From positions 472,436 to 536,435 of the forward strand of contig SMSO01000031.1 in NCBI GenBank assembly GCA_004764695.1: a stretch of 64,000 bases of DNA, in the 5' to 3' direction. This stretch comes from Schizochytrium sp. TIO01. Lineage: Eukaryota; Protista; Bigyra: Labyrinthulomycetes. The notes under the pieces were generated by a model. The model made no database searches. It was not told the origin of the DNA and saw nothing but the letters and a program-made list of their open reading frames with translations. Position numbers and translations under genes: made by a program. Below are positions 16,285 through 31,564 of this stretch, one piece after another. The stretch's first letter is position 1. Every line of letters begins with the position of its first letter.

Positions 16285-18625
16285 ACACCAGCTCATGCTT
16301 TTTACAGGTCAATTTCATATGTATTAGCCCCAAACCCAGCCTATTTGAGAAGGGAGCCTAGGTTGACTTTTCTTAGGCAAGCTTGTTCCCCCCATGCATA
16401 CCTGATGGATTTCACAGATTCTCTCGTACGATTTTATTTTTTTCACAACCAAAGTCGGGTGCTATGAAAAGCGAGGCTTCCAATAGCCAACTTGGGAAGC
16501 TGATAGGGAGTCGGTTTCAGGAGAATGAATTCCGAGATACCAACTGAGGCAAATCGAGCTACTTCGCATGAACTTGCTTCAAATATTTTATTTTTGTGCA
16601 TGCTTATGACTCCTACAAGATGGGCTGATTGGCCAACCTAATCGTATTATTGTAAAACCACGAAGATGTCCTGAAGCATAGACTTACTCAATCTACACTA
16701 TTCGTCCTGTTTTCAAATAGAACCATTGTAATAGTCAATGACTCTCTTTTAAAAGCTTAGGTTAATAGTCTCTTTTTAAGTGAAGATATTTTCAAGTTGA
16801 AACATTTTTAAATTTTCAGATTTGTTTGATTTCTCGAGAGTGTTGCAAAGTCCTCGGTCCTGACATCTGATCAATTATGGATGTCGAGATCTTACAGTTA
16901 TCAATTCATGTTCGCAGAAGACATCTAAAATTGTGGGATATCTTATCTCTAGATTTTGGGTGAAGATTTTAAATTTCTTTTGCTATGCAACAGTGCCGTG
17001 CCCCACATTATAAGCCAGATTGGAGCCCTGAAAAACAACCAGGAATCTAATTTTCAGGTGGATAACTTTCATTAAATGAGTACATTTACAAATGAATAGT
17101 TCACAAACGAGCAACTCAACCGCAGAAGATAATGTGTTATACTCGGTATTTATGTACCTAGGTGCTACTCCACCTAGAGGATACAATCCTAAGTCAAAGC
17201 AAAATTGAACGATTGCCTTGCTTTCCGTTTTTGACCCAAGTCAAAAGATTTTTCAATTCAGTACCCCTGACTAGTGAGAGTGATAGATACCTACCATGGA
17301 ATGTTACCAGACTATATATGTGGTACCTACCTACCTAATACAAACTAGTAAAAGGGGAGAATGGGAAAAAACCGCCGCACCATTGACAGGTATATATATA
17401 TAGAGAGAGAGTATGCCTGTAAGTGCTGTTTTTGCCTAAGGTGGAGGAGGGGTATTAGGAAGAGTAGCCCTGACTTTTAGCGAGAGAGGGTCTAAGGTAG
17501 ATCGATAGATAGATAGACAGATGCCATAGTAAGGACGAGAGAGAGCGATAAAGAGAAGGGAGAAAGCGAGAGGTAGGTGGCTAGCTAGGTGCTAGACAGG
17601 CATTGACTAGTCACTCTACTTTACCAGCACTGCTACTAGAATCCACTATTTAGGTCCACTAGGGCTAATCATTGATCATAAAAGACCAACTAGTAGTAGT
17701 CACTAGCCCCCTGAGTAGGAGGAGGTGCAGATGATAGTGGGAGAGGCTGTTAGGCAGGTGTTAGCTACCCTATGTAGAGGTAGATGGGTGGTACGTAGTA
17801 GTTAGCTAGCATAGTGGCATAGTGGTAGTTAGACGAAATACTAAGGTGATGCTCTCAGATGATGGGTCGTGGACGGAGTGCTTAGCTGGTTAGATAGCCA
17901 CTCTTAGACAGAGAAGTAAACAGAAGGAATGAAAGGAGCAAAAGGAGCAACAAGAGGAGCAAGGAGGACCCTCGATCTCAATCTCTCTCTGTGTATCTCT
18001 TGCACGCAGAGTCGAGTGGTGCTCCGCAGGAGGCGTGTAGCCCGGGGGGATCAAATCAGGTGGGCGGCGTCCCTGTCACGCTCTGGCGTGGGCAGAGGCT
18101 GCAGTGCCAAGGGAGAGTGCTGATAACGGCATCCATCATCGTTAGCGAGCCGCCAGCTAACTCTCTATCTATTTAGTTTAGCCAAGAGCGAGCTAGTCTT
18201 CACCTTGCCTCGGCCGAGTTCATCGGCTAGGTTTGTGTTTATCTGTCCATCTGTGCCAAACTGTTTTGCGTTGCTGCGCTCTTATCCTTCGTAGCAGCCT
18301 TTCTATTTGGACTCGTTGGAGAGATTTCATCCAAATCAATCATCTGCTTGTGAAGCAACTAAGCAACATTGGTTCATCAGTATCTATCAAACTGTTTTGA
18401 TTGACAGGTACTGACTCACCTCCACTTCGGGCAGTATCTTCACCTCCTTCATCCCTTACCTTTCTTTAGAAGAAAATCTTTCTACAGGAGAGGAGAACAT
18501 CTTTGACGCTCTTTTGCTTTGAGTAGTGAACATCCGTCTATAGATCTATCCGTGCTTTTGTGCATCTATTCTCAGCTCTGTCGACTTGCCAATACACAAA
18601 ATCGAATCAAATCTGCTTTGTCAAA

Positions 18626-21600
18626 ATGAGCTTTGGTGGATTTAATTCGGGTGGCGGCGGAGGCTTCGGCAACTCTGGCGGTGGCGGTTTCGGTAACTCT
18701 GGAGGCAGTGGTGGATCCCTTTTTGGTGGCGGAAACTCCGGTGGAGGTTTTGGAGCCTCTAACACTGGGGGAGGTTTTGGAGCCTCTAATAACTCTGGAG
18801 GAGGTTTTGGAGCCTCTAATAACTCTGGAGGAGGTTTTGGAGCCTCTAATAACTCTGGAGGTGGCGGCTTTGGCTCGTCAAACTCTGGTAGCAGCTTCGG
18901 CTTTGGCGGAGGTAACAACAATTCAGGAGGCGGCTTTGGCTCCTCGAACACCGGAGGTAGCTTTGGTAGCTCAAACACTGGCGGTGGCTTTGGCAGTTCG
19001 AACACTGGCGGCGGATTTGGGTCTTCAAATACCGGTGGTGGCTTTGGCTCCACCAACACTGGTGGTGGCTTTGGCTCCACCAACACTGGTGGTGGCTTCG
19101 GCTCCAACACTAGTTTTGGCTCTCCTAGTCAGCCAGCAAACAACTCGTTTGGTAGTGGTGGAAGTTTTGGGTCCTCTAATACAGGTGGCGGCTTTGGGTC
19201 TTCCAATGCTGGCGGTGGCTTTGGGTCTACCAATACTGGCGGCGGCTTTGGGTCTACCAATACTGGCGGCGGCTTCGGGTCTAACAATACTGGCGGCGGT
19301 AGTTTGTTTGGTGGTAGCAGTACCTCAAACAACTCTGTATCCTTTGGAGGCTTTAACAGCAGTAGCACTAGTGCTGGTGGATTCGGATCTTCAAACGCTA
19401 CTGGCGGATTCGGAGCCTCTAATTCAGGAGGTGGCTTCAATGCAGGTAGTACAGGTACCACTGTCGAATTCCAGCCCACTGTGGACTCTGCTAGCAGTAG
19501 TAATGAGGTGTTTATGACTATCTTAGCAATGAACCAGTACGCAAATAAATCTGCGGAGCAGCTTCGTTTGGAGGACTACAGCGCTGGCCGCCGACCAGGC
19601 TCAACCCAGGGAAATTCAGGGCAACCTGCAAGTGGAGGGTTTGGCGCCCCTGCCTCTGGAGGCGGCCTCTTCGGTTCTAACAACACAAACGCAAACAGTG
19701 GAGGTTTGTTTGGAGGTGGTGGGAACTCTGGAACATCCTTTGGCGCTAGCAATAACAATGGTGGAGGTGCTCTTTTTGGTTCATCAGGTAACACCAACTC
19801 TTTTGGCACCTCCTCCTCGAGTGGTGGCATGTTTGGTTCAAGCAATACCTCCACTAGTGGCTTTGGGAGTACCAGTACTGGGTTTGGTAGCAACACTCAA
19901 ACAAACTCCGGTGGAGGTCTCTTTGGAGGCGGAAACAACACGAACAGCTCAGGTGGAGGTCTCTTTGGTGGCGGAGGAAATCAAAACACAAACACTGGAG
20001 GAGGTCTTTTCGGTGGCGGCGGAAACACAAACACCGCCGGTGGTTTTGGATCCAATCAACCTCAGAGTGGAGGCCTTTTTGGATCTTCGAATTCCCAAGC
20101 TAGTTCTGGAGGTCTTTTTGGAGGAAATACTGCGAACAATAACACCTTTGGAAACAGTGCAAACAACAGTGGTGGTGGGCTTTTTGGTTCTACGAACAAC
20201 AATCCAAGTGGCGGATTTGGTTCTTCTAATGCTAGCGGTGGTGGCCTTTTTGGTGGATCGAATACTGGCACTGCTGGTCAGACAAACCAGTTTGGTTCTT
20301 CAGGAGGATCTCTGTTTGGTGGTCCTACAGCTACAAATAATACTTCTGGCGGCCTCTTCGGTGGCTCCAACAACAATGCCGGCGGTGGAGGTGGTCTTTT
20401 TGGATCCTCCAACAATACAAGTGCTAGTGGAGGTGGCCTCTTTGGCTCCACGAACACTAACACAAGTGGAGGGGGTCTTTTCGGCTCTAGCACTGCCGCT
20501 CCCAACACAGGTGGTGGCCTTTTTGGTGGGTCAGCTGGCACTTCTGGTGGTGGTGGTCTCTTCGGTTCTTCAAGCGCTGCTCCCGCAAATGGCGGAGGTG
20601 GTCTCTTTGGAGGCTCGGGAGCGTCTACCGGCTTCGGCTCCAGCAATACCACAGGTGGTGGCGGTCTTTTCGGTAGCTCGGGGAACACATCAAATACATT
20701 TGGTTCAGCCAACACGAGTGGTGGAGGCCTTTTTGGCTCAACCACCACTAACAACACAGCAGGTGGTGGCCTCTTCGGGAACTCTGGCACATCGTCCTTC
20801 ATGCAGTCATCACAGCCGCAGCAGCAACCAATGCAAAATCAAATGCAACCCAACAATCAACTTTTGATGCAGCAGCAAATGCTGGCATTAACGCAAGGCG
20901 AACCTTACGCAATGGGTCCGTCGAGTCAAATGGCCCGTCATATCGCACTTGCCAATGAAGCATGGAATCCTGAGCCAAATAGTGAAGACAAGTCTCGGGA
21001 TGTTGATGACGATTCAGACCGCTTGGGTCGTCACTCAGGATCTGTCGTGAAGTCTGACAAGACGAAAACCCCTGGTCGTGGTGTGGGCTCAACACCAATT
21101 GGCAAGGTTCAGATTAGACCTCGTGGTTATGGTCGCACTTATGGTGCTGTTGCTTCTATGGTCGGTTCTGATGCTGCCTCAGCACCGGGTTCTAGCTTGC
21201 GCTCTGCGCGCACTGTTTCAGCTGCAGCTCCATCGACTCCAGGACCCTCCAATGGTAATGTCAAGACTGCCACAGACAAGGCAAAACAAGATAAACCTGG
21301 AAATGGTGTTCTTACGCCTGGTGTCTTTGATTTGAACAAAAGACTATCTATCAAAAAATCAAATCGGAAGAACACCCCTCTAGCTCTGAGTTCTTCACAA
21401 AATGTCCCTGCTATTGAAAATGTTGACAGTGAAGATTCTCATAGTCAATATAGGGGCGGCGCTAGCAGCAGCGATGACGAGAATAAGTCATACGATGATT
21501 CTTTAAAGACTCCTTCCCGTACTGGCGGGGCAAAATCGCACAGCAAGTCTTCATCCACGCCCCTGCATGACGAGGAAGGTGTTTACGATACACCCGATCG

Positions 21601-24600
21601 CCTAGCTCTGTCTGTGGATAAAGGCAATATTCGCTCAAGCACAGTTACTCGAAGCGCTCGTCGTAAGGGCCCATTATCAGAGCATTGCCCGCGCATGAGT
21701 GAAGCCATGATGGATGCAGGTTATACGACTTCACCATCTATGCGTGATCTTATGGGCATGACTGACGAAGAGCTTAAGTCAGTATCCAATTTTCGCATTG
21801 AGCGCGATAAATATGGATCTGTACAATGGGTAGGCAAGGTTGACGTTCGCGATCTTGACATTGATGCAGTTGTAACCATCGAAGAGATGTCTATTGAGGT
21901 ATATCCTGATGAGGACGGCACACCTGAGCGTGGGACAAAGCTGAATCGTCCAGCTATATGTGTGCTCAGTCATGTAGAGATTCCGAACGACTTTGAAGGA
22001 GCCAAGGAAGACTTTGCACAGTGGGTCAAGGAGACGTACCAACCCCTACTTAAGGACACTACCTTTATTAGCTATGATGTCGAAACTTCTGATTGGTGTT
22101 TCAAGGTGGAACACTTCACTCGCTATGCATTTAACACGGATGCATCTACTCCGTACCCACGCTCGGCGCGCGGAAGACGTGCGCGTGAGGTATCTCGCGA
22201 GGAACCTCTTACTCCTGGTCTGCATGGCAGAGACGATGAGATGGACCGATTGGAGGTGGATGATGATCGCGGCTCTATGGGTGAGTTTTCCTCTCCTGAG
22301 GATTTGAATGGTGGTACAACTGGCAGCAATACTTACGATGATAGGTTTAACGTCGATGCGGGACATGATGAATTTCGGCATCAACAGCCAGGACACCAGG
22401 CTCACATGCTTAATGCGTTACCGGCAGGTTTGCAGAACGTCCCTCCTCTGCGAGGTTTTAGATTCAATCAAGCTCGTCCCTTGGCCAACCAGGAATTGGG
22501 CAGAGACCCCTTTGGAGCTATTGGCCATGGTGATGATGATGATGATGATGACGTGGATATTGAGGGTGCTGGACTTTACTCCGTTTCATCAATTAGACCA
22601 GAACCCATTTTATTCAACGAACTGAATGAATTACCAATTGAGGATGGACCAACGTTTGCGATTTTTAGGGATGCAGGTGGAGATGGAAGACTGTTGCAAG
22701 GGGGATTAGGGGAATTAAATAGAACGCAGAGGCCCCCTATCCGAAAGTTGCATCGGCCGTTCCGTGCGAGTTGGGGTGCCAATGGGAGACTTGTTTTTGC
22801 TAAGGGTTCTCGGGTACAGTTGATGAAGGTGAATGTGGATGATCCTACACCTAGCGATGGCGAGCGTATTCGTATTGTTATGGACGCCTGCAAGATGCAT
22901 GTAGCAAATACAAGGGCCATTCAAAACGAGGAAGATGACGATATGAGACGTGTAGAGCATTCTGCAAATTGTGTACTTGCCACAGCGGTTGATAACCTTC
23001 TGGGGCACGCGCAGCCTTCTCCAAGCTTCGGTGCCAGCAGTACAGAAGTAGAAGTGAAGGTTTGGTCTTTGATTAAGAACTCCTGGTTTGTTGGAGGACC
23101 TTGTGTTCCCGACCCAAGCATTGCCGAGTCAGTCGAGATGACCTGGGAGTCATGGTATGAAGCCCTTCCTCGTCGCAGTGAAACTGCTGTTTGCAACCAG
23201 AGGCGTATTAGGGATGAGTGGCTTGATAGTCATGATACATGGCTTAAAGAACATCTGACAAACGAAGCTCCTGAGTATCTTGGCGACGTGGCTGGTGCTT
23301 TGAGTTTGAAGTGCATTGAGCAGGCCAGCGACCTGGCTATAGAAAGGGGAGACTTTCGTCTTGCAACGCTCATTAGTCAAGCTGCAGGAGATTGTAAGGT
23401 TCGTGATCTGTTGCGCAGACAGCTTGAGCTATGGACTGAAAATGGTGCAATCTCTCACATTGACGATGAACTTGTGAATATATACCAAATGCTGGCCGGT
23501 AATGTTCAGGAGGAGCAGCGCAAGAAACCTTGGCTACGCGCTCTTGCCCTGAACTCATGGTATGCGCATGACCCCCTTGCTAACCTTGCTCAAGGCATGG
23601 GAACCTATCAGTCTGCCTTTATGGCTGGATATGCTCCTTCTCCACGCCCAACTTGGTACAGCCAGAAGCATGACTGTACCAATTGTTTTGATACTGTGTA
23701 TCAAGTCCTTCAATTAGCTTGCAGTCCAAACACTCATCCAATGGCTGATGTTCTGAACCCACGCGGCTACTCTGGAAACATGCTTACATATGGAATGTCG
23801 TGGACTTTGTGGCACATTTTGAAAAGTTTTGGAGTTTTTGGAGGAATGCTTTCTTCCCTGCAAGAGCACCAGCTTGGAATGAACTATATCCTTGAGCTTG
23901 AAGCTAAGGGTTCTTGGACTTGGGCTGTTGCAGTTGCCATGTTTCTTCCTGAACCTGCAAAACGTGAAGAAGCAGCACGCGCTTTACTCGATAGGCATTT
24001 TTCTGCATCATCGGAAACAAGCATCTTTTTTCAAGAGTTAGGCATTCCACAAACCTGGATAGCCTACAGCGCTGCATTTCGCCAGGGTTACTCTGCGAAT
24101 ATCGGCGTTGATGCTTTTGAAAGCCGTTGCGCCGAGGCGGAGAGTTATGGCCTGGCTGGTGATCTTGCGCGGCGTTGCCAGGTAATTGATGAACACTTGG
24201 CTACTCCTGCAATCCTTAACGGTAATACTTCTCTTCTTTATAGAATGCTGAGGCCCGATGAGGAATATATTCAACATACTGCTGTGACAACGCGTGCAAG
24301 GTGGGCTTGCCGATGCTTGGTTTATCTTGAGTATGCTTGTCTTCGTGAAAGGTTGAGGAACATTGAGGAGGACGACATTTTTGACTTCAGGGACAGCTGT
24401 CGCAAATTACAGATGGACTTGATCGCGCTGCAAAGTAACCGTACAATCGCGTTGCACTCCGCCCTTGCTGCGGAGATTGGCACGTGGTTACAGTTAAGAG
24501 CTACTGAAATTCTCCGGAGTACAGGTACAGATCACTCCACAGATCCACGCGATTATGAAGCTCCTCTATTGGTGCCTGCTCATGAGACGGTTTTGCGTAC

Positions 24601-24643
24601 TGCTGTTGCTCGCCTCACTGTTTCTTTTATCGAATCATTTTAA
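18626..24643 (+). CDS. NUP98: Nucleoporin Nup98-Nup96 precursor
   Basis: ATG at 18626 (MSFGGF). GFG/GLFG repeats; GLEBS (GTTVEFQP..ILAMNQYANKSAEQLRLEDY); autoproteolytic domain (YTTSPS..VSNFRIERDKYGSVQW..FKVEHFT); Nup96 part (FRASWGANG, GDFRLATLISQ, W..ALAL..WY). Confidence 0.96.
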   Translation: MSFGGFNSGGGGGFGNSGGGGFGNSGGSGGSLFGGGNSGGGFGASNTGGGFGASNNSGGGFGASNNSGGGFGASNNSGGGGFGSSNSGSSFGFGGGNNNSGGGFGSSNTGGSFGSSNTGGGFGSSNTGGGFGSSNTGGGFGSTNTGGGFGSTNTGGGFGSNTSFGSPSQPANNSFGSGGSFGSSNTGGGFGSSNAGGGFGSTNTGGGFGSTNTGGGFGSNNTGGGSLFGGSSTSNNSVSFGGFNSSSTSAGGFGSSNATGGFGASNSGGGFNAGSTGTTVEFQPTVDSASSSNEVFMTILAMNQYANKSAEQLRLEDYSAGRRPGSTQGNSGQPASGGFGAPASGGGLFGSNNTNANSGGLFGGGGNSGTSFGASNNNGGGALFGSSGNTNSFGTSSSSGGMFGSSNTSTSGFGSTSTGFGSNTQTNSGGGLFGGGNNTNSSGGGLFGGGGNQNTNTGGGLFGGGGNTNTAGGFGSNQPQSGGLFGSSNSQASSGGLFGGNTANNNTFGNSANNSGGGLFGSTNNNPSGGFGSSNASGGGLFGGSNTGTAGQTNQFGSSGGSLFGGPTATNNTSGGLFGGSNNNAGGGGGLFGSSNNTSASGGGLFGSTNTNTSGGGLFGSSTAAPNTGGGLFGGSAGTSGGGGLFGSSSAAPANGGGGLFGGSGASTGFGSSNTTGGGGLFGSSGNTSNTFGSANTSGGGLFGSTTTNNTAGGGLFGNSGTSSFMQSSQPQQQPMQNQMQPNNQLLMQQQMLALTQGEPYAMGPSSQMARHIALANEAWNPEPNSEDKSRDVDDDSDRLGRHSGSVVKSDKTKTPGRGVGSTPIGKVQIRPRGYGRTYGAVASMVGSDAASAPGSSLRSARTVSAAAPSTPGPSNGNVKTATDKAKQDKPGNGVLTPGVFDLNKRLSIKKSNRKNTPLALSSSQNVPAIENVDSEDSHSQYRGGASSSDDENKSYDDSLKTPSRTGGAKSHSKSSSTPLHDEEGVYDTPDRLALSVDKGNIRSSTVTRSARRKGPLSEHCPRMSEAMMDAGYTTSPSMRDLMGMTDEELKSVSNFRIERDKYGSVQWVGKVDVRDLDIDAVVTIEEMSIEVYPDEDGTPERGTKLNRPAICVLSHVEIPNDFEGAKEDFAQWVKETYQPLLKDTTFISYDVETSDWCFKVEHFTRYAFNTDASTPYPRSARGRRAREVSREEPLTPGLHGRDDEMDRLEVDDDRGSMGEFSSPEDLNGGTTGSNTYDDRFNVDAGHDEFRHQQPGHQAHMLNALPAGLQNVPPLRGFRFNQARPLANQELGRDPFGAIGHGDDDDDDDVDIEGAGLYSVSSIRPEPILFNELNELPIEDGPTFAIFRDAGGDGRLLQGGLGELNRTQRPPIRKLHRPFRASWGANGRLVFAKGSRVQLMKVNVDDPTPSDGERIRIVMDACKMHVANTRAIQNEEDDDMRRVEHSANCVLATAVDNLLGHAQPSPSFGASSTEVEVKVWSLIKNSWFVGGPCVPDPSIAESVEMTWESWYEALPRRSETAVCNQRRIRDEWLDSHDTWLKEHLTNEAPEYLGDVAGALSLKCIEQASDLAIERGDFRLATLISQAAGDCKVRDLLRRQLELWTENGAISHIDDELVNIYQMLAGNVQEEQRKKPWLRALALNSWYAHDPLANLAQGMGTYQSAFMAGYAPSPRPTWYSQKHDCTNCFDTVYQVLQLACSPNTHPMADVLNPRGYSGNMLTYGMSWTLWHILKSFGVFGGMLSSLQEHQLGMNYILELEAKGSWTWAVAVAMFLPEPAKREEAARALLDRHFSASSETSIFFQELGIPQTWIAYSAAFRQGYSANIGVDAFESRCAEAESYGLAGDLARRCQVIDEHLATPAILNGNTSLLYRMLRPDEEYIQHTAVTTRARWACRCLVYLEYACLRERLRNIEEDDIFDFRDSCRKLQMDLIALQSNRTIALHSALAAEIGTWLQLRATEILRSTGTDHSTDPRDYEAPLLVPAHETVLRTAVARLTVSFIESF
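18635..20780 (+). repeat. Coding FG-repeat region of Nup98 (GGGFG repeats before GLEBS, mostly GGGLFG after)
   Basis: Near-tandem 27-30 nt units, e.g. ggaggttttggagcctctaataactct. Confidence 0.9.
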
Positions 24644-26375
24644 ATATCCTGTTTCCTCGTGCACTTTATATGCTCACTAAAAACAATAACCGGTTTCTGT
24701 GCATATCCGTGCAACACCTTCCCTCACTCTTCACCCTTCCCTTTCTTTGCTAGCTTTTAAAAAACTTAAAACAAATTTATCATTTGCAGCTATTGAGCAT
24801 TCTATCACCGCCTCCAACTAGATGTGTTCTAGTGCACCTGTTTCCAGTCTCTAAATAGTAGTAATGCAAAACGTGAGTAGATGTTTTGATGGGTGAATCC
24901 TGACTACTCTTATTTCTCTCCACTTTTACGGAGCCTGAATGTAATATATTGCTGCACTCGAGCTGGTCATATGCGCGAGGAGCACACTGTTATTATCCAA
25001 AGTCTTTTGATGAGCGCTGGCAAACAATCAAAGTATCTTACTAGTTGACAGCTTCTGCAGCATCAGTGCTACCATTTTTGAGTTCTTCTAGTCTTTTCTT
25101 GATATTAGATGATGAGCGGTAGCTTCTAGAAGCCCATACTTTGTACTTAGATCGGTTAAAGTCAGGCTACATGTCGTTCTGAGGTCCACGGCAATTATTT
25201 TAATTCTTATAGAATGTAGAATTTTACGCAGAATTTGGGACTGCAGACTGTACGAGTATATTTTGCTTGGAAACTCAATTCAATCTACCTATATACCATT
25301 TCATCAAGTCTGAGCTCGTTGAATCTGAAGAATGTTAGCATCAAACAATATGAAACATGTCGCGATGGAAGGAAGGGCAAAGATGAAGAAAGTGCCGTAG
25401 TTCTTATTTCCTTTGAAGAAACCAAGGAGACGATAAAATACCCTCATTCTGGCAAAATCAGTCAAGGTGGTGCACCTAAATAGTGCTCGCGCGAAGTAAA
25501 ACGAAAATTTTTGTACTACCACGGTATCCTACATTCTCTGTACTTTAACACGGAATAGGCCCTACACTGTTTATTGTACCTACCTACCATCTCCAACTAA
25601 GTACTGATAGTCTACATTTATTTACCTACTAGGGTTTGAAAGAAAGAAAGAAAGAAAGAAGAATTGACTGCTGATGAGTGGGAAGGAGTGAAACAATGAA
25701 GAAATCAACGGGTGTTTAGCAGTGTTTGCAATATAATCGAGAAATCAACTCAAGAGAGAGAGCTCAAGTTGATCGAGAGAGGCACCAAAGGCTCTCGCGT
25801 TTAATGCTATATAATTGACTCATGCGGTTTGGGATCAGGCAGTCTGGGGCGAACAGACAAATGATTCAAACAAGCAAACAAAGACGCACGCAAACAAACA
25901 AACAGACACACAGACAAACAGCTTTAATCGAACAACCATTCACAAAACAAAACAAAGCAAAAAGAAAGAAGTAAAAAGAAATTCAATTTTGAAACAGACA
26001 AAATAAAAGAAATAAAAAGAACAACGATGATGGATTCTCAGAGAGACCCTGAAGCAAGCAACTTAGGTAGGTACTCCTATGTTGACGGTACGTAAGTAGC
26101 TAAGTAAAGCAGAAGCTGAGTTCATAGGTTAGGTTAAGTATGATGATGCGTAGCAGTACTAGCGTAGTACGTAGCCAGCACTAGGCATTCCTATTTAGAG
26201 AGGAGCTGTGCCTAATACTAGCTATATAGGTAGGCACTATTTGAACAGTAGGGAGGTAGAAGAAAGAAAAGAAAAAGAAAGAAAGCAAGAATGACAAGGC
26301 AGGGTAAGGCAAGGCAAGGCGAGGCAAGAAGAAGCAACAAGTGACGAGAGCGACAGCAAAACGAGAGAGCGCGCC

Positions 26376-29300
26376 ATGGACGCGGACGTTTTGCGCTCAC
26401 AGCTGAGGAAGTCTCTGGGGTCTTCCAAAAGGTTTCAAGGAGTGGCTCTTCGTCACGACGACGAGTCCAGCGAAGATGATGACGACAAGCACGGAGACGA
26501 AACCAGTAGCGTAGAGAGCAGCGCTGAAGACGAAGACGAAGACGAAGAGGAAGGCGAGGAAGAGGAAGAGGAAGAGGAAGACGACGATGAAGATGACGAC
26601 GATGAGAATGAAGATGACGATGACGAAGATGATGAAGTGTCAGATACGTCAGACTCGCAAAAGAGCTCCCGTGGACCAACTGCATCATCGCCATCGTCAT
26701 TATCATCGGCCTCAGCATCAGGTAAGATGATGGGTATGACGTCAAAATCGAACTCATCAGACTCACTAGGAGCCCAAATCAAGTCTCTGGGCAATGCTAA
26801 ACGTACTTCTGCGTCTCATGGGGCTCGAAGAGATCATGAGATGCTCCGAGAAACGGATGATGATGATGAGAATTCGGACGGCAGTTCTGACGAAGAGCAC
26901 ATGGGAGCCACAACCACATCGGAGAAACACGCGCTCAGAAGTCTAGCAAATGGCGCAGGCGAAGGTTCCGAAGATAGTACAGCTGCAGAGGGAAACAATA
27001 TGAGTCATGCCTCAGTTCTAGACGCCTGGTCGAGGCAGATTGAAGAAACTATGGGCCATCGCGCTACGCCTAAACCTCGGCGCCGAAACCGCATGACAAG
27101 CGATGACTTTGAAGACGACCTTGACGACGACGAAGACGAGTCTGCCTTCAATGTACAATACTCTAAAGCACATGCCTTGCCAGCCAGCGCTAGTGAGCGT
27201 CCACCAACAGCTGAAGGTCAAGAAGGTGCTGACGAATTTATTCCTGGTGCACAATCTCGAGAGGATCTTGAAAACCTGGGTAAAACATTCATTCGTGTGA
27301 AAGCTGAAACCGGGGTGTGGCTTGACCGCGTACTTGGGACTTCAATGTTTGAAACTGGAAGTAATATTGATGCTACTGACACAGGAACTCTGTACCAAGT
27401 CCTTAAATCTGGCGTTGTTCTCTGTCGCATAGCAAATGCCATTCTCCCTGGGTGCATTACATCCTTTACAAGTGATTTCTCAAAGGAAACGCCATACATG
27501 CAGCCACTTAGCGAACGGGAAAATATAAAAAAATTCATTCGGGCCTGTCACGACGCAATGAGCATTCCTGATTCGCTGCTTTTTGATGTTGGAGACCTGC
27601 ACAACATGCAAAATATCCCAAAGGTAATTCTATCTTTGCGTGCTGTTGCTGAGTATGCTCGAAAATTCCTTCATTCTGCTCCTGAAGTACATTGGCGGAA
27701 ACTTGATGATGTTCCTTTAATGCACGATGAAGACGCTGTGCTCATGGCATCTTCGGAAATGTCGAAGATGGATAGCGCGACGGTACACCACATGTACGCG
27801 GTGGATTCTGCAGCGAAGGATTCACCAGTTAAAAGCAATCGTTCCCCAGAAGAACAGAACTTTGAAGACCGCAAGCGAAATATCCAGAAAAACCTTGTTT
27901 TATCAACCCTCACACTCCAGCAGCAAGCACAGTCGCAATATATGCAACGTCCTCATTCGGCGCGGTCTGGCGGCTCTTACTCACCCGCATCCTCTTCAAC
28001 GTCGCGGCCAACACCTGTATCAGCGTCAAACCTTGCAGATGAGCACGATCAGCGTGCCGGAGTGGAGACAGCGTCACTAGGTGATGCAAATAACCTTCAC
28101 GTAGGTGAGCAGTCCGTTGAGAGCTGGTTAGCCTCCCTGGGCCTATCCATATACTTTGGTGCGTTCGTTGAAGATGGCTGGGATGAGCTATCAACAGTGG
28201 CTCTCATGCATGCTAGTGATTTAAGGGATGTTGGAGTTCGGAAGAAGGGCCATGTTCGTAAGCTGGAGAGGGCTATTAAACAACTTAAAGGTGGCCTTAG
28301 TGCAACTTCGGGGCGAGAATCTCCAATGTCCGGAAGCATGCGTAGCTCTCGGGCTGGATTTCGCAGCCCGCCAGCTTCCCCAGAGCGCACAAGCCGAATT
28401 CCTAAGTCCCCTCGTGGGGGGTTTGCTACTCAACTCAATCTTGGTGCGATGCGGGGTCACAGCCTGCATTCTATGGATCGGCAAGAGCTCTATAACAAGG
28501 ACAAGACTTGGGCAGAGTGTCGAACTCGAGCAAATGTAACACAGGACTTAGACGATGCGAAGGCGATATGGAAAGATTTGCACGACATTAGAGCCGACAT
28601 GGAGCGACATGAAAGGTCGTTGGCGCGTCCTGAAGAAGCTAAACGCTCCATGCGGCACCTCCTTACTTTAACCGAAGACCTGGTGCGCTCTCTTATGCCC
28701 TTTGACGCACCAATTGTAATCGACATAGGCTGGGACTCGATAAAATGTGGCTATGTTTTTAGCAAGACTCCTGTCCTTCTCCCATCGATTGTAGGCAAGT
28801 TTGAGCATGCACAAAACAGCATGGTCCGCACGACGCAGTCATCTACAATGTCAGTGGGGCGTGATGTGTTCGATGAGTGCGGCAAGTCTCTCCAGGCGGG
28901 TGGGTCTCGCTCGAGCAGCTATACAGGTGACCAGGGAAGCTTCGTTGTACGTCATGCTATTCATCGGGGTATTGATTCAATTGTTGACCCTCAGGTTGTA
29001 GAATGGGATGACATGGAAAAAATTCTTCAGCACATGTACAGGGACATCCTGCAGACCAAGGCCGAACATCATCCTGTTTTAATTATTGAGCCTTGCCGAA
29101 GGTGGGGGTCAGCTGAACGAAATCGATTGATGGAGATTCTTACAAACATATTCAAAGTTCCGGCAGTATACTTTACACCCGCAGCTCCGCTGGTTGCGTA
29201 CAAGGCTTCTCAGAAAAGTTGCGTTGTACTAGATATGGGCGAATCGCGATCAACGGCTAGCGTTGTCTTCAATAACAGGTTAGTGAAGAATGCAGTTGTT

Positions 29301-30770
29301 CACTCACCAATTGGTGGTTTGCAGCTTACAGAATTGATGATGCAATCCCTCACCCAGGATGGATACGACTTTAAGTCGGTGTTCGAAGCCCAGAACCCAG
29401 CTCGCTTTTCGTCAACACGACACTTTATGGAACAAGAGATGGCCCGCGAGATAAAGGACCGCGTTTGCGTTATATCGAATGGTTACGAAGAGTACTGTGT
29501 TACTGCGGAGAACCTGCCTGATATTCTTGGAGCTTATCTTCCACGCGTCACCCGGGGCGCGCCTTACCTCAATGTTAGTGAGGCCCGTGTGCAGGTTCCC
29601 GAGGCTCTCTTCTCTCCTGATTTGGTTCGACGTGATCAGTTTTATAATGGCGGTAGTCTTCAACACATTATAAAGGCCGCTTTGGACCTCTGTACCGAGT
29701 CAATTGTGGCTGCTGCCTCAGAAACTGTGCTCATTTGCGGAGGCACGGGCAACCTTCGAGGTCTTGCTGGTCGCTTGCAGAAGGAGCTAAATGAAATGTT
29801 TGCACATGAATCTCGAAAACCTCCACAAGTAATCCTCGCTACGGAGGATGATCTCACTGACAGTGTTGAAAACCCCATTTTCACAGCCTGGCAGGGTGGC
29901 TGCATGCTAGCGTTGCAGCACGATTTTCAGATGCGGTGGATTGCGCGTGAGGCTTTTCTAGAACAAGGCGATGAGGTGTTTACAAAATCCTCCATTGCAG
30001 AGGGCACTGGCCCATTCCCGTTGTATAGTCCTGACACAGCTTTATATAAGGCAAATAGAGCAGTGCACTCAATGCGGGAGTTACTATCAGTTTTGGGGAA
30101 AGGGTCAGCATCCTCAAGTCAACCTCAAGAAGGGTCCTCACTCTACGATGGACATCATCAACCACGAGGTGAGGATCTTCGAGGAAGGCAGCAGAACTAT
30201 CAAGACCAGCAGCAACAACCAAAGATTGATATGCACCAGGTGCAATCTCATCAGTCTCAAGGACGATCAATGGCGCATCGGGCCAAATCTCCTATGAGTA
30301 GCTCACGTATCAAGTCTCCACGCTCTGTTCGCTCGCCACATACAGGCTTAACTGTCGATTCTAGAGTTAACACGAAATACGATGATGAGAGTTACAGTGA
30401 ATATCTCTCGCCCCGTTCGTTGAAGAGCATGATTCAAGACGTGGCCGTTTATCTGGAGCAGCATAAATGTTCTGAAGGCCTTGTCCTTGATGTAAAAATG
30501 CATCTTTTTGAGCAGTATTCTCGCGTTCCACCTCGCAGGCGTCTTTCCGTTGAAGATATTTTACTTTCGTTGCCAAAAGAATTGAGGGACCGCCTTGCAA
30601 AGTTTGTTTCCATGAGCAATCTCGAAGTTGAACAACAGGGGCGGCGGTCACCCATGAGTTCTCGCAATGGTATCATCAGCAATCTTCTTCATGCCAATAG
30701 TGGTGGGGAAAGCGATGACTTCGATGATGACGATGACGACGGCGAGGAGTACTTTGCTATGGCAATTTAA
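26376..30770 (+). CDS. Multidomain actin-fold protein: acidic N-terminus, calponin-homology (CH), SAM, actin-related domain, C-terminal helical module
   Basis: 1464 aa. CH: VWLDRVLG..LKSGVVLCRIANAI..ENIKKFIRAC..LFDVGDL..IPKVILSL. SAM: VESWLASLGLSIYFGAFVEDGWD..DLRDVGVRKKGHVRKL. Actin: PIVIDIG..PSIVG..WDDMEKI..HPVLIIEP..FKVPA..VLDMG..IGGLQLT..AREIKD..PEALFSP..CGGTG..RLQKEL..AWQGG..WI. Confidence 0.88.
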   Translation: MDADVLRSQLRKSLGSSKRFQGVALRHDDESSEDDDDKHGDETSSVESSAEDEDEDEEEGEEEEEEEEDDDEDDDDENEDDDDEDDEVSDTSDSQKSSRGPTASSPSSLSSASASGKMMGMTSKSNSSDSLGAQIKSLGNAKRTSASHGARRDHEMLRETDDDDENSDGSSDEEHMGATTTSEKHALRSLANGAGEGSEDSTAAEGNNMSHASVLDAWSRQIEETMGHRATPKPRRRNRMTSDDFEDDLDDDEDESAFNVQYSKAHALPASASERPPTAEGQEGADEFIPGAQSREDLENLGKTFIRVKAETGVWLDRVLGTSMFETGSNIDATDTGTLYQVLKSGVVLCRIANAILPGCITSFTSDFSKETPYMQPLSERENIKKFIRACHDAMSIPDSLLFDVGDLHNMQNIPKVILSLRAVAEYARKFLHSAPEVHWRKLDDVPLMHDEDAVLMASSEMSKMDSATVHHMYAVDSAAKDSPVKSNRSPEEQNFEDRKRNIQKNLVLSTLTLQQQAQSQYMQRPHSARSGGSYSPASSSTSRPTPVSASNLADEHDQRAGVETASLGDANNLHVGEQSVESWLASLGLSIYFGAFVEDGWDELSTVALMHASDLRDVGVRKKGHVRKLERAIKQLKGGLSATSGRESPMSGSMRSSRAGFRSPPASPERTSRIPKSPRGGFATQLNLGAMRGHSLHSMDRQELYNKDKTWAECRTRANVTQDLDDAKAIWKDLHDIRADMERHERSLARPEEAKRSMRHLLTLTEDLVRSLMPFDAPIVIDIGWDSIKCGYVFSKTPVLLPSIVGKFEHAQNSMVRTTQSSTMSVGRDVFDECGKSLQAGGSRSSSYTGDQGSFVVRHAIHRGIDSIVDPQVVEWDDMEKILQHMYRDILQTKAEHHPVLIIEPCRRWGSAERNRLMEILTNIFKVPAVYFTPAAPLVAYKASQKSCVVLDMGESRSTASVVFNNRLVKNAVVHSPIGGLQLTELMMQSLTQDGYDFKSVFEAQNPARFSSTRHFMEQEMAREIKDRVCVISNGYEEYCVTAENLPDILGAYLPRVTRGAPYLNVSEARVQVPEALFSPDLVRRDQFYNGGSLQHIIKAALDLCTESIVAAASETVLICGGTGNLRGLAGRLQKELNEMFAHESRKPPQVILATEDDLTDSVENPIFTAWQGGCMLALQHDFQMRWIAREAFLEQGDEVFTKSSIAEGTGPFPLYSPDTALYKANRAVHSMRELLSVLGKGSASSSQPQEGSSLYDGHHQPRGEDLRGRQQNYQDQQQQPKIDMHQVQSHQSQGRSMAHRAKSPMSSSRIKSPRSVRSPHTGLTVDSRVNTKYDDESYSEYLSPRSLKSMIQDVAVYLEQHKCSEGLVLDVKMHLFEQYSRVPPRRRLSVEDILLSLPKELRDRLAKFVSMSNLEVEQQGRRSPMSSRNGIISNLLHANSGGESDDFDDDDDDGEEYFAMAI

Positions 30771-31564
30771 TCACTTTCTACGTGGGTGTTTGTGAAAGGC
30801 TCCGCAATAATTCATCTCTCATTTTCATAGTTTTCAGTATTCATACCATGGCATAATCAAATCAAAGAGAGATAGAGGTCATTTTTAGGATTGAAACTCT
30901 TAACACGTTATTGTATTCGTGAGTAAACCGACTAGGATAAACTTTATCTTTGCTTTACTAAAAAATAAAAAGGATATTTAAATCCTACTATTGACTACCT
31001 GCTTGGTTTCAATAATTGTTGATGGTTGAGAAAAGTGACATCTCATGCAGGTAAGTCTGGCAATGAACAAACCTCCTAGGAGTTGAATTAATATTGCAGA
31101 ATGTACAAAGTTGCAGAGGTTGGAGCTCTTCACACAGTACTTGTTGCGCTTGATGTCGTTTGGTAGGTAGACACCTTAATGGGGTCTAGATTTGCAAAAG
31201 AATGTTTTTGGTGATACATTAGGTACCTTGTGACTCTCATCGTTACAGATAGTATTAAATTAATTTGGGCACCACCTCCTTACTTTACAAATATTAGCTG
31301 ACCTACCAACTAACTAAGTACCTAGCCTAGCCTCGTAGTAGTATTCTTTCGAGGTAGGATAGCTAGCTACGATTGCAAAGACTTCTAACTTGAAGCAAAA
31401 GAAGAAGGACCGGCGCTGGTAGTTACCTCCTTACGCACCTACTACTTGATGGTAGGTAGTCCAGCTAGTGAGAGTAGGCACAGAAGAAGGAGGAGGAGGA
31501 GACTCGAAGAAAGAAAGATGCAAAACCAAGCATCTCTTAAGAGATCTAGTCGTACTCTCATTGG

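Follow-up and report, generated by a model that had tools for sequence, protein, structure and literature searches.

Actin-related proteins (ARPs) are an old and well-catalogued family. It is rare to meet a new class with new domain partners, and such a class usually points to cytoskeletal machinery specific to one lineage. One gene in a 64,000-nucleotide stretch of the Schizochytrium sp. TIO01 genome (hereafter the window: assembly GCA_004764695.1, contig SMSO01000031.1, positions 472,436 to 536,435) joins an actin-like domain to a calponin-homology (CH) domain and a SAM domain in a single chain. What does an actin fold do in such a protein: does it still behave as a filament subunit, or does it serve the chain in some other way? 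We find that residues that hold the gamma-phosphate and support hydrolysis in actin are replaced in every member of the family, and on balance we lean towards seeing the protein as an orphan ARP turned multi-domain scaffold, a multivalent protein that organises or anchors an actin-based structure, rather than a filament subunit.

A divergent actin fold in a CH-SAM-actin protein

The gene occupies 26376-30770 on the plus strand as a single, intron-free open reading frame (ORF) that starts with ATG and runs for 1464 codons and a stop, with no internal stop codon in the translation. A Pfam hmmscan of the full protein recovers CH, SAM and Actin, all above their gathering scores. The gene is present as a single copy in the 64-Mb genome, where the other matches are only weak (23-27 bits).

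The actin-like domain (28710-29984, plus strand; residues 779-1203) matches the Pfam Actin profile (PF00022) over nearly its whole length, from position 6 to 406 of 410, with 196.7 bits against a cut-off of 27 (E 6.4e-58); this near-complete match above the gathering score places it in the actin family. Its best solved relatives in the PDB are conventional actins (E 4e-31). Its identity with the genome's own proteins is 27% for actin, 25% for Arp1 and 21% for Arp2, and pairwise scores fall from 104 bits against conventional actin to 90 bits against Arp1 and 49 or less against the other paralogues.

The genome encodes its canonical set elsewhere: five actin genes, Arp1, Arp2, Arp3, an Arp4-like gene and several further actin-like genes. 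The preliminary description of this locus, written from the letters alone, had left the placement of the actin domain among actin and the ARPs to a phylogeny. In a maximum-likelihood tree of seven family members and the genome's own actin-family genes, the family forms one clade (support 100/100) with a stem of 1.21 changes per site, separate from actin, Arp1, Arp2, Arp3 and the Arp4-like gene and with no supported sister among them; long branches are involved and call for caution. Nor does any of the paralogues L008, L009, L014, L015 and L017 group with the family with support in this tree of one genome. The approximately unbiased (AU) test rejects a clade of the family and conventional actin (p 0.003), and the domain is therefore not a bona fide actin carrying an extension, as in filactin; a recent, filactin-style derivation from conventional actin was rejected on the same result. 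By its sequence, the actin-like domain is a separate ARP lineage, an orphan with respect to the genome's named ARPs, and in this it differs from the Arp1 to Arp4 classes.

The protein also departs from known ARPs and actins in its build. Classical ARPs stand alone or carry only inserts and extensions, whereas here the fold sits in a 1464-residue chain with a CH domain, a SAM domain, a C-terminal domain and conserved termini. The preliminary description had taken actins and ARPs to be stand-alone as a rule, which is roughly true: filactin (PMC2441452) and a group of chordate CRAL_TRIO-actin fusions, described below, are exceptions. Filactin resembles our protein in that both are long multi-domain chains with an actin-family domain close to the C-terminal half, and filactin's actin domain is nearly identical to conventional actin (PMC2441452). 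In contrast, the domain studied here has 27% actin identity and replaced catalytic residues, the AU test rejects an actin sister, and the N-terminal domains of the two proteins are unrelated.

The same CH-SAM-Actin order is found at full length in P0001, P0002, P0003, P0004 and P0005. P0001 is the protein of a near-identical strain, and P0002, from Hondaea fermentalgiana, is 64% identical and named "Actin" in the database; identity is 51% for P0003, 45% for P0004 and 39% for P0005. P0004 (also P0152) belongs to Mucochytrium quahogii and is named "SAM domain-containing protein". CH, SAM and Actin are carried as well by P0155 (1551 residues, named "actin-related protein") and by P0006, a truncated model of 887 residues. 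None of these three public names conveys the architecture. The orthologues score 107-165 bits against the Pfam Actin profile.

To place the family more widely, residues 300-1210 were compared exhaustively by HMMER with 1.84 billion representative proteins. Only 7 matched at E<=1e-30; one of these is a 236-residue CH fragment, one is a tandem actin without CH or SAM, and the rest are family members. Ordinary actins follow next below the family, at about 100 bits. The architecture is carried by only about seven lineages in that set, and the family appears to be confined to labyrinthulomycetes (thraustochytrids and their relatives), its closest named relatives being the thraustochytrids Hondaea fermentalgiana and Mucochytrium quahogii. 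In the literature we found no description of a CH-SAM-actin architecture, or of ARPs in labyrinthulomycetes. An ARP is a known kind of protein; in the literature, we found no account of this architecture, of its orphan clade or of the C-terminal domain.

Several lines of evidence show that the frame is a real gene. In each of four runs, all from different studies, a single unspliced contig crosses the ORF, from 26355-26381 to 30883-30932, with no joints, and one of these contigs extends further. The upstream intergenic DNA (25350-26350) is uncovered in the four runs, apart from one 155-nt piece of low depth in one run; single contigs over the ORF next to bare upstream DNA are the pattern that would be expected of transcript assemblies. 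The Mucochytrium protein derives from a complete MMETSP transcript with the same architecture. Among 24 strain differences inside the ORF, 15 are synonymous and 9 non-synonymous, against a random expectation of 23% synonymous, and the coding frame is therefore under purifying selection. Both ends of the protein are conserved across five aligned members, which argues against a fusion artefact. Much of the preliminary description thus holds: the ORF and its three domains lie where it had placed them; the transcripts that it had looked to do not break the frame; the architecture that it had not recognised is indeed rare; and the labyrinthulomycete host that it had supposed fits the nearest named relatives.

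Nucleotide site and filament faces

Actin holds the gamma-phosphate of ATP through S14 and the amides of the loops, and it places the hydrolytic water by means of Q137 and H161. We compared these positions in an ungapped motif alignment. Phosphate loop 1, DNGSGM in actin, reads D(I/L)GW(D/N/S)(S/T) in the family and DIGWDS in our protein. Position 14 is W in all seven members; among 53 other actin-like proteins it is S or T in 49 and W in none. G15 is likewise replaced in 7 of 7, by D, N or S. The position of Q137 holds A in the family (A936 here) and G in one member. Phosphate loop 2, DSGDGVTH in actin, has become D(M/L/I/V)GESR(S/V)T, here DMGESRST, so that D157→E, G158→S, V159→R and H161→T are common to all seven members. 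The catalytic and gamma-phosphate residues of a polymerising ATPase actin (S14, G15, Q137, D157, G158 and H161) are thus replaced. With S14, Q137, H161 and the loop residues gone, the sequence argues for the loss of actin-type hydrolysis; we infer that this activity has been lost, and the cleft is probably altered or empty.

The surfaces that join subunits in a filament have diverged further than the average of the fold. A variable insert of low complexity lies in subdomain 2, and inserts follow actin residues 60, 75, 203, 272 and 332. When the two filament faces are compared with actin over approximate residue sets, the barbed face is 19% identical and the pointed face 16%, below the 26% of the whole fold; the same genome's Arp1 keeps 64% on the first and 51% on the second. 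A polymerising actin would combine high overall identity with conserved filament contacts; the values here are 27% overall and 16-19% at the faces, and the sequence gives no sign that the polymer contacts of actin have been retained. The proposal in the preliminary description that the protein polymerises itself through its actin fold is therefore not borne out: the gamma-phosphate and hydrolysis residues are replaced in every member, subdomain 2 carries an insert, and the faces keep 16-19% identity where Arp1 keeps 51-64%.

In these respects the domain is like the ATPase-degenerate ARPs, yeast Arp7 and Arp9 and dynactin Arp10/11: it has a fold that the Actin profile recognises, about 25% identity, inserts in surface loops and replaced nucleotide-site residues. 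As in those proteins, the fold is presumably a binding module and not a polymer subunit.

Accessory domains and the proposed scaffold

The single CH domain lies at 27249-27659 (plus strand). Its Pfam match (PF00307) covers residues 329-428, at 27360-27659, with 33.4 bits against a cut-off of 26. The alignment shows conserved columns at 292-316, upstream of this match, and the conserved stretch that starts near residue 292 is probably the first helix of the domain. The best solved relatives are the single CH domains of ARHGEF7/6 (PIX), Vav, Rng2/IQGAP, calponin and transgelin (E 8e-8 to 2e-2); with a score above the cut-off and single-CH proteins as nearest relatives, the domain falls in the type-3, single-CH class. 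Like these proteins, ours has one CH domain and not the tandem pair of alpha-actinin; unlike them, it combines the CH domain with an actin fold and a SAM domain, an arrangement that none of them shows. Because the similarity is modest (E 8e-8 at best), a binding partner cannot be transferred from any of them, and an association with actin through the CH domain may serve as a lead.

The SAM domain (28107-28289, plus strand; residues 578-638) is recognised by both SAM_1 (PF00536; 46.9 bits against a cut-off of 23) and SAM_2 (PF07647; 31.9 bits, also passing). Its best solved relatives are those of Caskin-1/2 (E 1e-15, 60 bits), followed by SHIP2, ANKS1A/B and the Eph receptors; Shank, DGK-delta and tankyrase are further relatives. 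Many SAM domains in these proteins self-associate or pair with other SAM domains: Caskin, Shank, tankyrase and DGK-delta self-assemble head to tail, and SHIP2-EphA2 and ANKS1A are examples of pairing with other SAM domains. Our domain is closest to that of Caskin-1/2; unlike Caskin, which has SAM domains in tandem, the protein has only one.

Near its end, the protein carries a small helical domain (30408-30617, plus strand; residues 1345-1414) of no recognised fold or family. AlphaFold2 predicts five helices, with block-mean predicted local distance difference test (pLDDT) values of 87-95 over fragment residues 11-80. Foldseek against the PDB gives no convincing fold for this model (best E 0.55), and the best VIA-align score, Z 6.3, falls on a helical hairpin only. 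The repeated VIA-align matches are to the C-linker hairpin of CNG, HCN and KAT1 channels over about 44 residues, with Z 5-6, below what is meaningful for helical models. The domain has no Pfam family, no ESM Atlas match at 0.9 or above and no second copy in the genome.

The chain ends in a conserved tail (30708-30767, plus strand), in which an acidic run and an aromatic residue precede a terminal AMAI. D1454, D1455, A1461 and M1462 are invariant, and (W/F/Y)AMAI closes five of the six full-length members. The acidic run and aromatic residue near the C-terminus recall the nucleation-promoting factors of the WASP family, and the genome has both Arp2 and Arp3. Those factors combine a WH2 motif, a central helix and an acidic region with a tryptophan near the C-terminus. 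Our protein has no WH2 motif; its aromatic residue varies between W, F and Y among members, and what follows is the hydrophobic AMAI instead of acidic residues. The likeness to a WASP tail is a resemblance only. Pfam scans of the whole protein and of its C-terminal 261 residues detected neither WH2 nor any other actin-monomer motif. A WASP-type WCA region was rejected on these grounds: there is no WH2 motif, only the acidic-aromatic tail, whose W is not invariant.

In the scaffold that we favour, the actin fold would be no polymerising ATPase; it would serve as a rigid protein-binding module, as Arp7, Arp9 and Arp10/11 do within larger complexes. The SAM domain would make the protein dimeric or polymeric and hence multivalent, and the CH domain, together with the conserved termini, would dock the assembly on F-actin or on regulators of the cortical actin system. 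We infer the link between the protein and F-actin. A link to the ectoplasmic net may also be considered, as it would fit both the taxonomic range of the family and the net's actin skeleton (PMC12221091).

Six points weigh against this scaffold reading or against the evidence behind it. Not all type-3 CH domains bind F-actin: some do, others act in regulation or on different partners, and those of Vav, PIX and calponin serve other roles. D11, G13, K18, D154 and G156 of the nucleotide-site framework are kept in 7 of 7 members and G301-G302 in 6 of 6 (the truncated P0006 lacks the region); with D11, K18, D154, G156 and the GG pair in place, it is possible that the family has an altered nucleotide site. 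The filament-face residue sets follow published F-actin models and are approximate. The reference set of the tree is thin, as it consists of the ARPs of one genome with the named classes Arp1 to Arp4-like, and this bears on the orphan status of the family. The four runs are classed as RNA only by a tool's guess. Finally, AlphaFold2 modelled the actin region from the seven-sequence alignment with a mean pLDDT of 53, too poor for a fold search or an inspection of the cleft.

The alternative that survives best, which we nevertheless regard as unlikely, is that the actin fold is still subunit-like, fitting filaments of its own or of actin, and that clustering by the SAM domain lets the protein nucleate, cap or anchor filaments, for instance those of the bothrosome or the net. 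The pairwise scores, in which conventional actin and Arp1 come ahead of the other paralogues, point this way, as do the retained framework residues and a Caskin/Eph-type SAM domain that could gather several actin folds. So too do the presence of Arp2 and Arp3 in the genome and of an acidic-aromatic tail on the protein, and the apparent restriction of the family to organisms that own an actin-based ectoplasmic net. Against these stand the replacement of the catalytic and gamma-phosphate residues in all members, the variable insert in subdomain 2 with more inserts in subdomains 3 and 4, and two filament faces that fall below the fold average, unlike those of the same genome's Arp1 and Arp2; nor does Pfam find a WH2 or other actin-monomer motif. 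The protein is also not among 18 published net and bothrosome candidates, and no supplement entry of that study could be tied to it (PMC12221091). This counts for little, because the screen dropped proteins with homologues outside the group (PMC12221091).

We give rather poor chances to a net-specific organiser of a new class, a SAM-clustered platform of several pseudo-actin folds that would seed, cap or anchor filaments at the bothrosome, with the CH domain gripping the filament and the acidic-aromatic tail bringing in the Arp2/3 complex. If true, this would be a nucleation factor whose chain includes its own "first subunit".

Highly improbable, in our view, is a nuclear ARP. Its actin fold would then be built, as Arp4 to Arp9 are, into a chromatin-remodelling complex or another nuclear assembly, and the CH and SAM domains would have been added in this lineage. 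The family does fall weakly (81/81) on the side of the tree that holds the Arp4-like gene and two divergent ARPs; that grouping is unsupported, however, and unites the longest branches. ATPase-degenerate actin folds are generally typical of some nuclear ARPs, such as Arp7 and Arp9, and a basic patch, KPRRRNR, lies at residues 242-248; the patch is not conserved in P0003, P0004 or P0005. Furthermore, a CH domain of the PIX/Vav/IQGAP/calponin type belongs to cortical and signalling proteins, and the Pfam scans found no HSA-type partner or nuclear domain.

The last possibility, an assembly-made fusion of neighbouring genes or a decaying pseudogene, has practically no chance of being right and, as far as these data go, was rejected: nothing supports it beyond the Hondaea entry name "Actin", which could hint at careless gene modelling. 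Against it stand a frame that stays open for 1464 codons, a domain order shared by about seven lineages, the conservation of both protein ends, single unsplit contigs in four independent runs together with the complete Mucochytrium transcript, and the synonymous excess among strain differences.

The protein is of interest for two reasons. The ectoplasmic net with its bothrosome is what defines the labyrinthulomycetes; the net has an actin skeleton, and no molecular parts of the net or the bothrosome are known beyond actin (PMC12221091). Because the family is apparently confined to labyrinthulomycetes, whose net has no other known parts (PMC12221091), a conserved, expressed, single-copy actin-CH-SAM gene is a concrete candidate for the net or bothrosome, and Aurantiochytrium is genetically tractable. 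The protein is also a natural case of an actin fold that has lost the ATPase residues and kept the scaffold, and it may inform how an ARP turns into a pure binding module.

Further features of the gene and other actin-fold proteins

Outside the named domains, the gene encodes several conserved segments, all on the plus strand. The N-terminal motif MDADxLRxQxRKxL (26376-26435, residues 1-20) has invariant columns at M1, D2, A3, D4, L6, R7, Q9, R11, K12 and L14 in the alignment of five orthologues, and this invariant N-terminus supports the start codon. It is followed by a low-complexity region that is acidic and rich in Ser and Thr by composition (26457-27245, about residues 28-290), in which Asp and Glu make up 75% of residues 28-90. 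This region matches no Pfam family at E<=10 except for one chance-level row (E 5). Within its acidic part, a GAA/GAC (Glu/Asp) tandem repeat at 26526-26632 is 6 nt shorter than in the window in the contigs of all four runs and in P0001, and is therefore a length polymorphism between strains. The disordered N-terminal region also holds a short conserved motif, SHASVLDAWSRQIE (27006-27044, residues 211-223), with H211, S213, V214, A217, W218, I222 and E223 invariant.

Past the CH domain, the conserved motif DEDAVLMASxEMSKMDxxTVHxMYA (27732-27797, residues 453-474) has invariant columns from D453 to Y474 in the alignment and no Pfam family. A conserved helical segment that includes NVTxDLDDAKAIW precedes the actin fold (28479-28688, residues 702-771); invariant columns run from 705 to 776, and helices are predicted at fragment positions 2-18, 25-44, 46-50 and 53-71 with pLDDT 59-81, in a model that is otherwise poor. 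The actin fold is followed by a conserved extension (30009-30098, residues 1212-1241) in which GPFPLxSPDTALYKANRAV leads into a helix; G1212 to V1230 are invariant, and the helix is predicted at fragment positions 519-541 with pLDDT 69-80. The remaining linkers are acidic or rich in Ser, Thr and Gln, and four linker and flank segments scanned against Pfam at E<=10 gave no family. The upstream neighbour of the gene is an ORF of 2027 residues at 18560-24643 (plus strand), which stops 1.7 kb 5' of it.

The genome holds several unusual actin-fold proteins besides the one described here. The five conventional actin genes (L001-L005, on contigs C36, C31, C8 and, twice, C30) encode identical products of 376 residues from coding sequences that differ by 5-11 synonymous bases. 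Two more actin-like genes lack a close solved relative. L008 (C24:1672710-1673906) encodes 402 residues with a Pfam Actin score of 288 bits and has no PDB chain under a strict threshold of 1e-72. In L009/L020 (C3:645351-646960), the L009 exon of 339 residues has no PDB chain under a strict threshold of 1e-38; the Actin profile match of L009 comes in two pieces, probably split by an intron. L015/L016/L019 (C33:352955-354958) is an open frame of 843 residues with three partial Actin profile matches.

Beyond this genome, P0029, P0035, P0050, P0077, P0089 and P0110, which the HMMER comparison also turned up, are the chordate fusions mentioned above, proteins of 1.3-1.8 kaa with an N-terminal CRAL/TRIO (Sec14-like) domain and a C-terminal actin domain. 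Their hosts are shark, reedfish, bowfin, paddlefish, teleosts and amphioxus, and to our knowledge these proteins have not been described. They resemble the CH-SAM-actin protein in being long chains with an actin domain, theirs at the C-terminal end. In contrast, their actin is near-canonical, with 378-416 bits from Pfam Actin where our domain scores 197. At the N-terminus they carry a Sec14-like domain, and beyond the actin fold the chordate family is unrelated to ours. In P0049, a protein of 1181 residues, a reverse-transcriptase domain (RVT_1) is followed directly by a near-canonical actin domain, and this entry could stem from read-through of a retroelement or from a faulty gene model; it, too, was among the HMMER matches.

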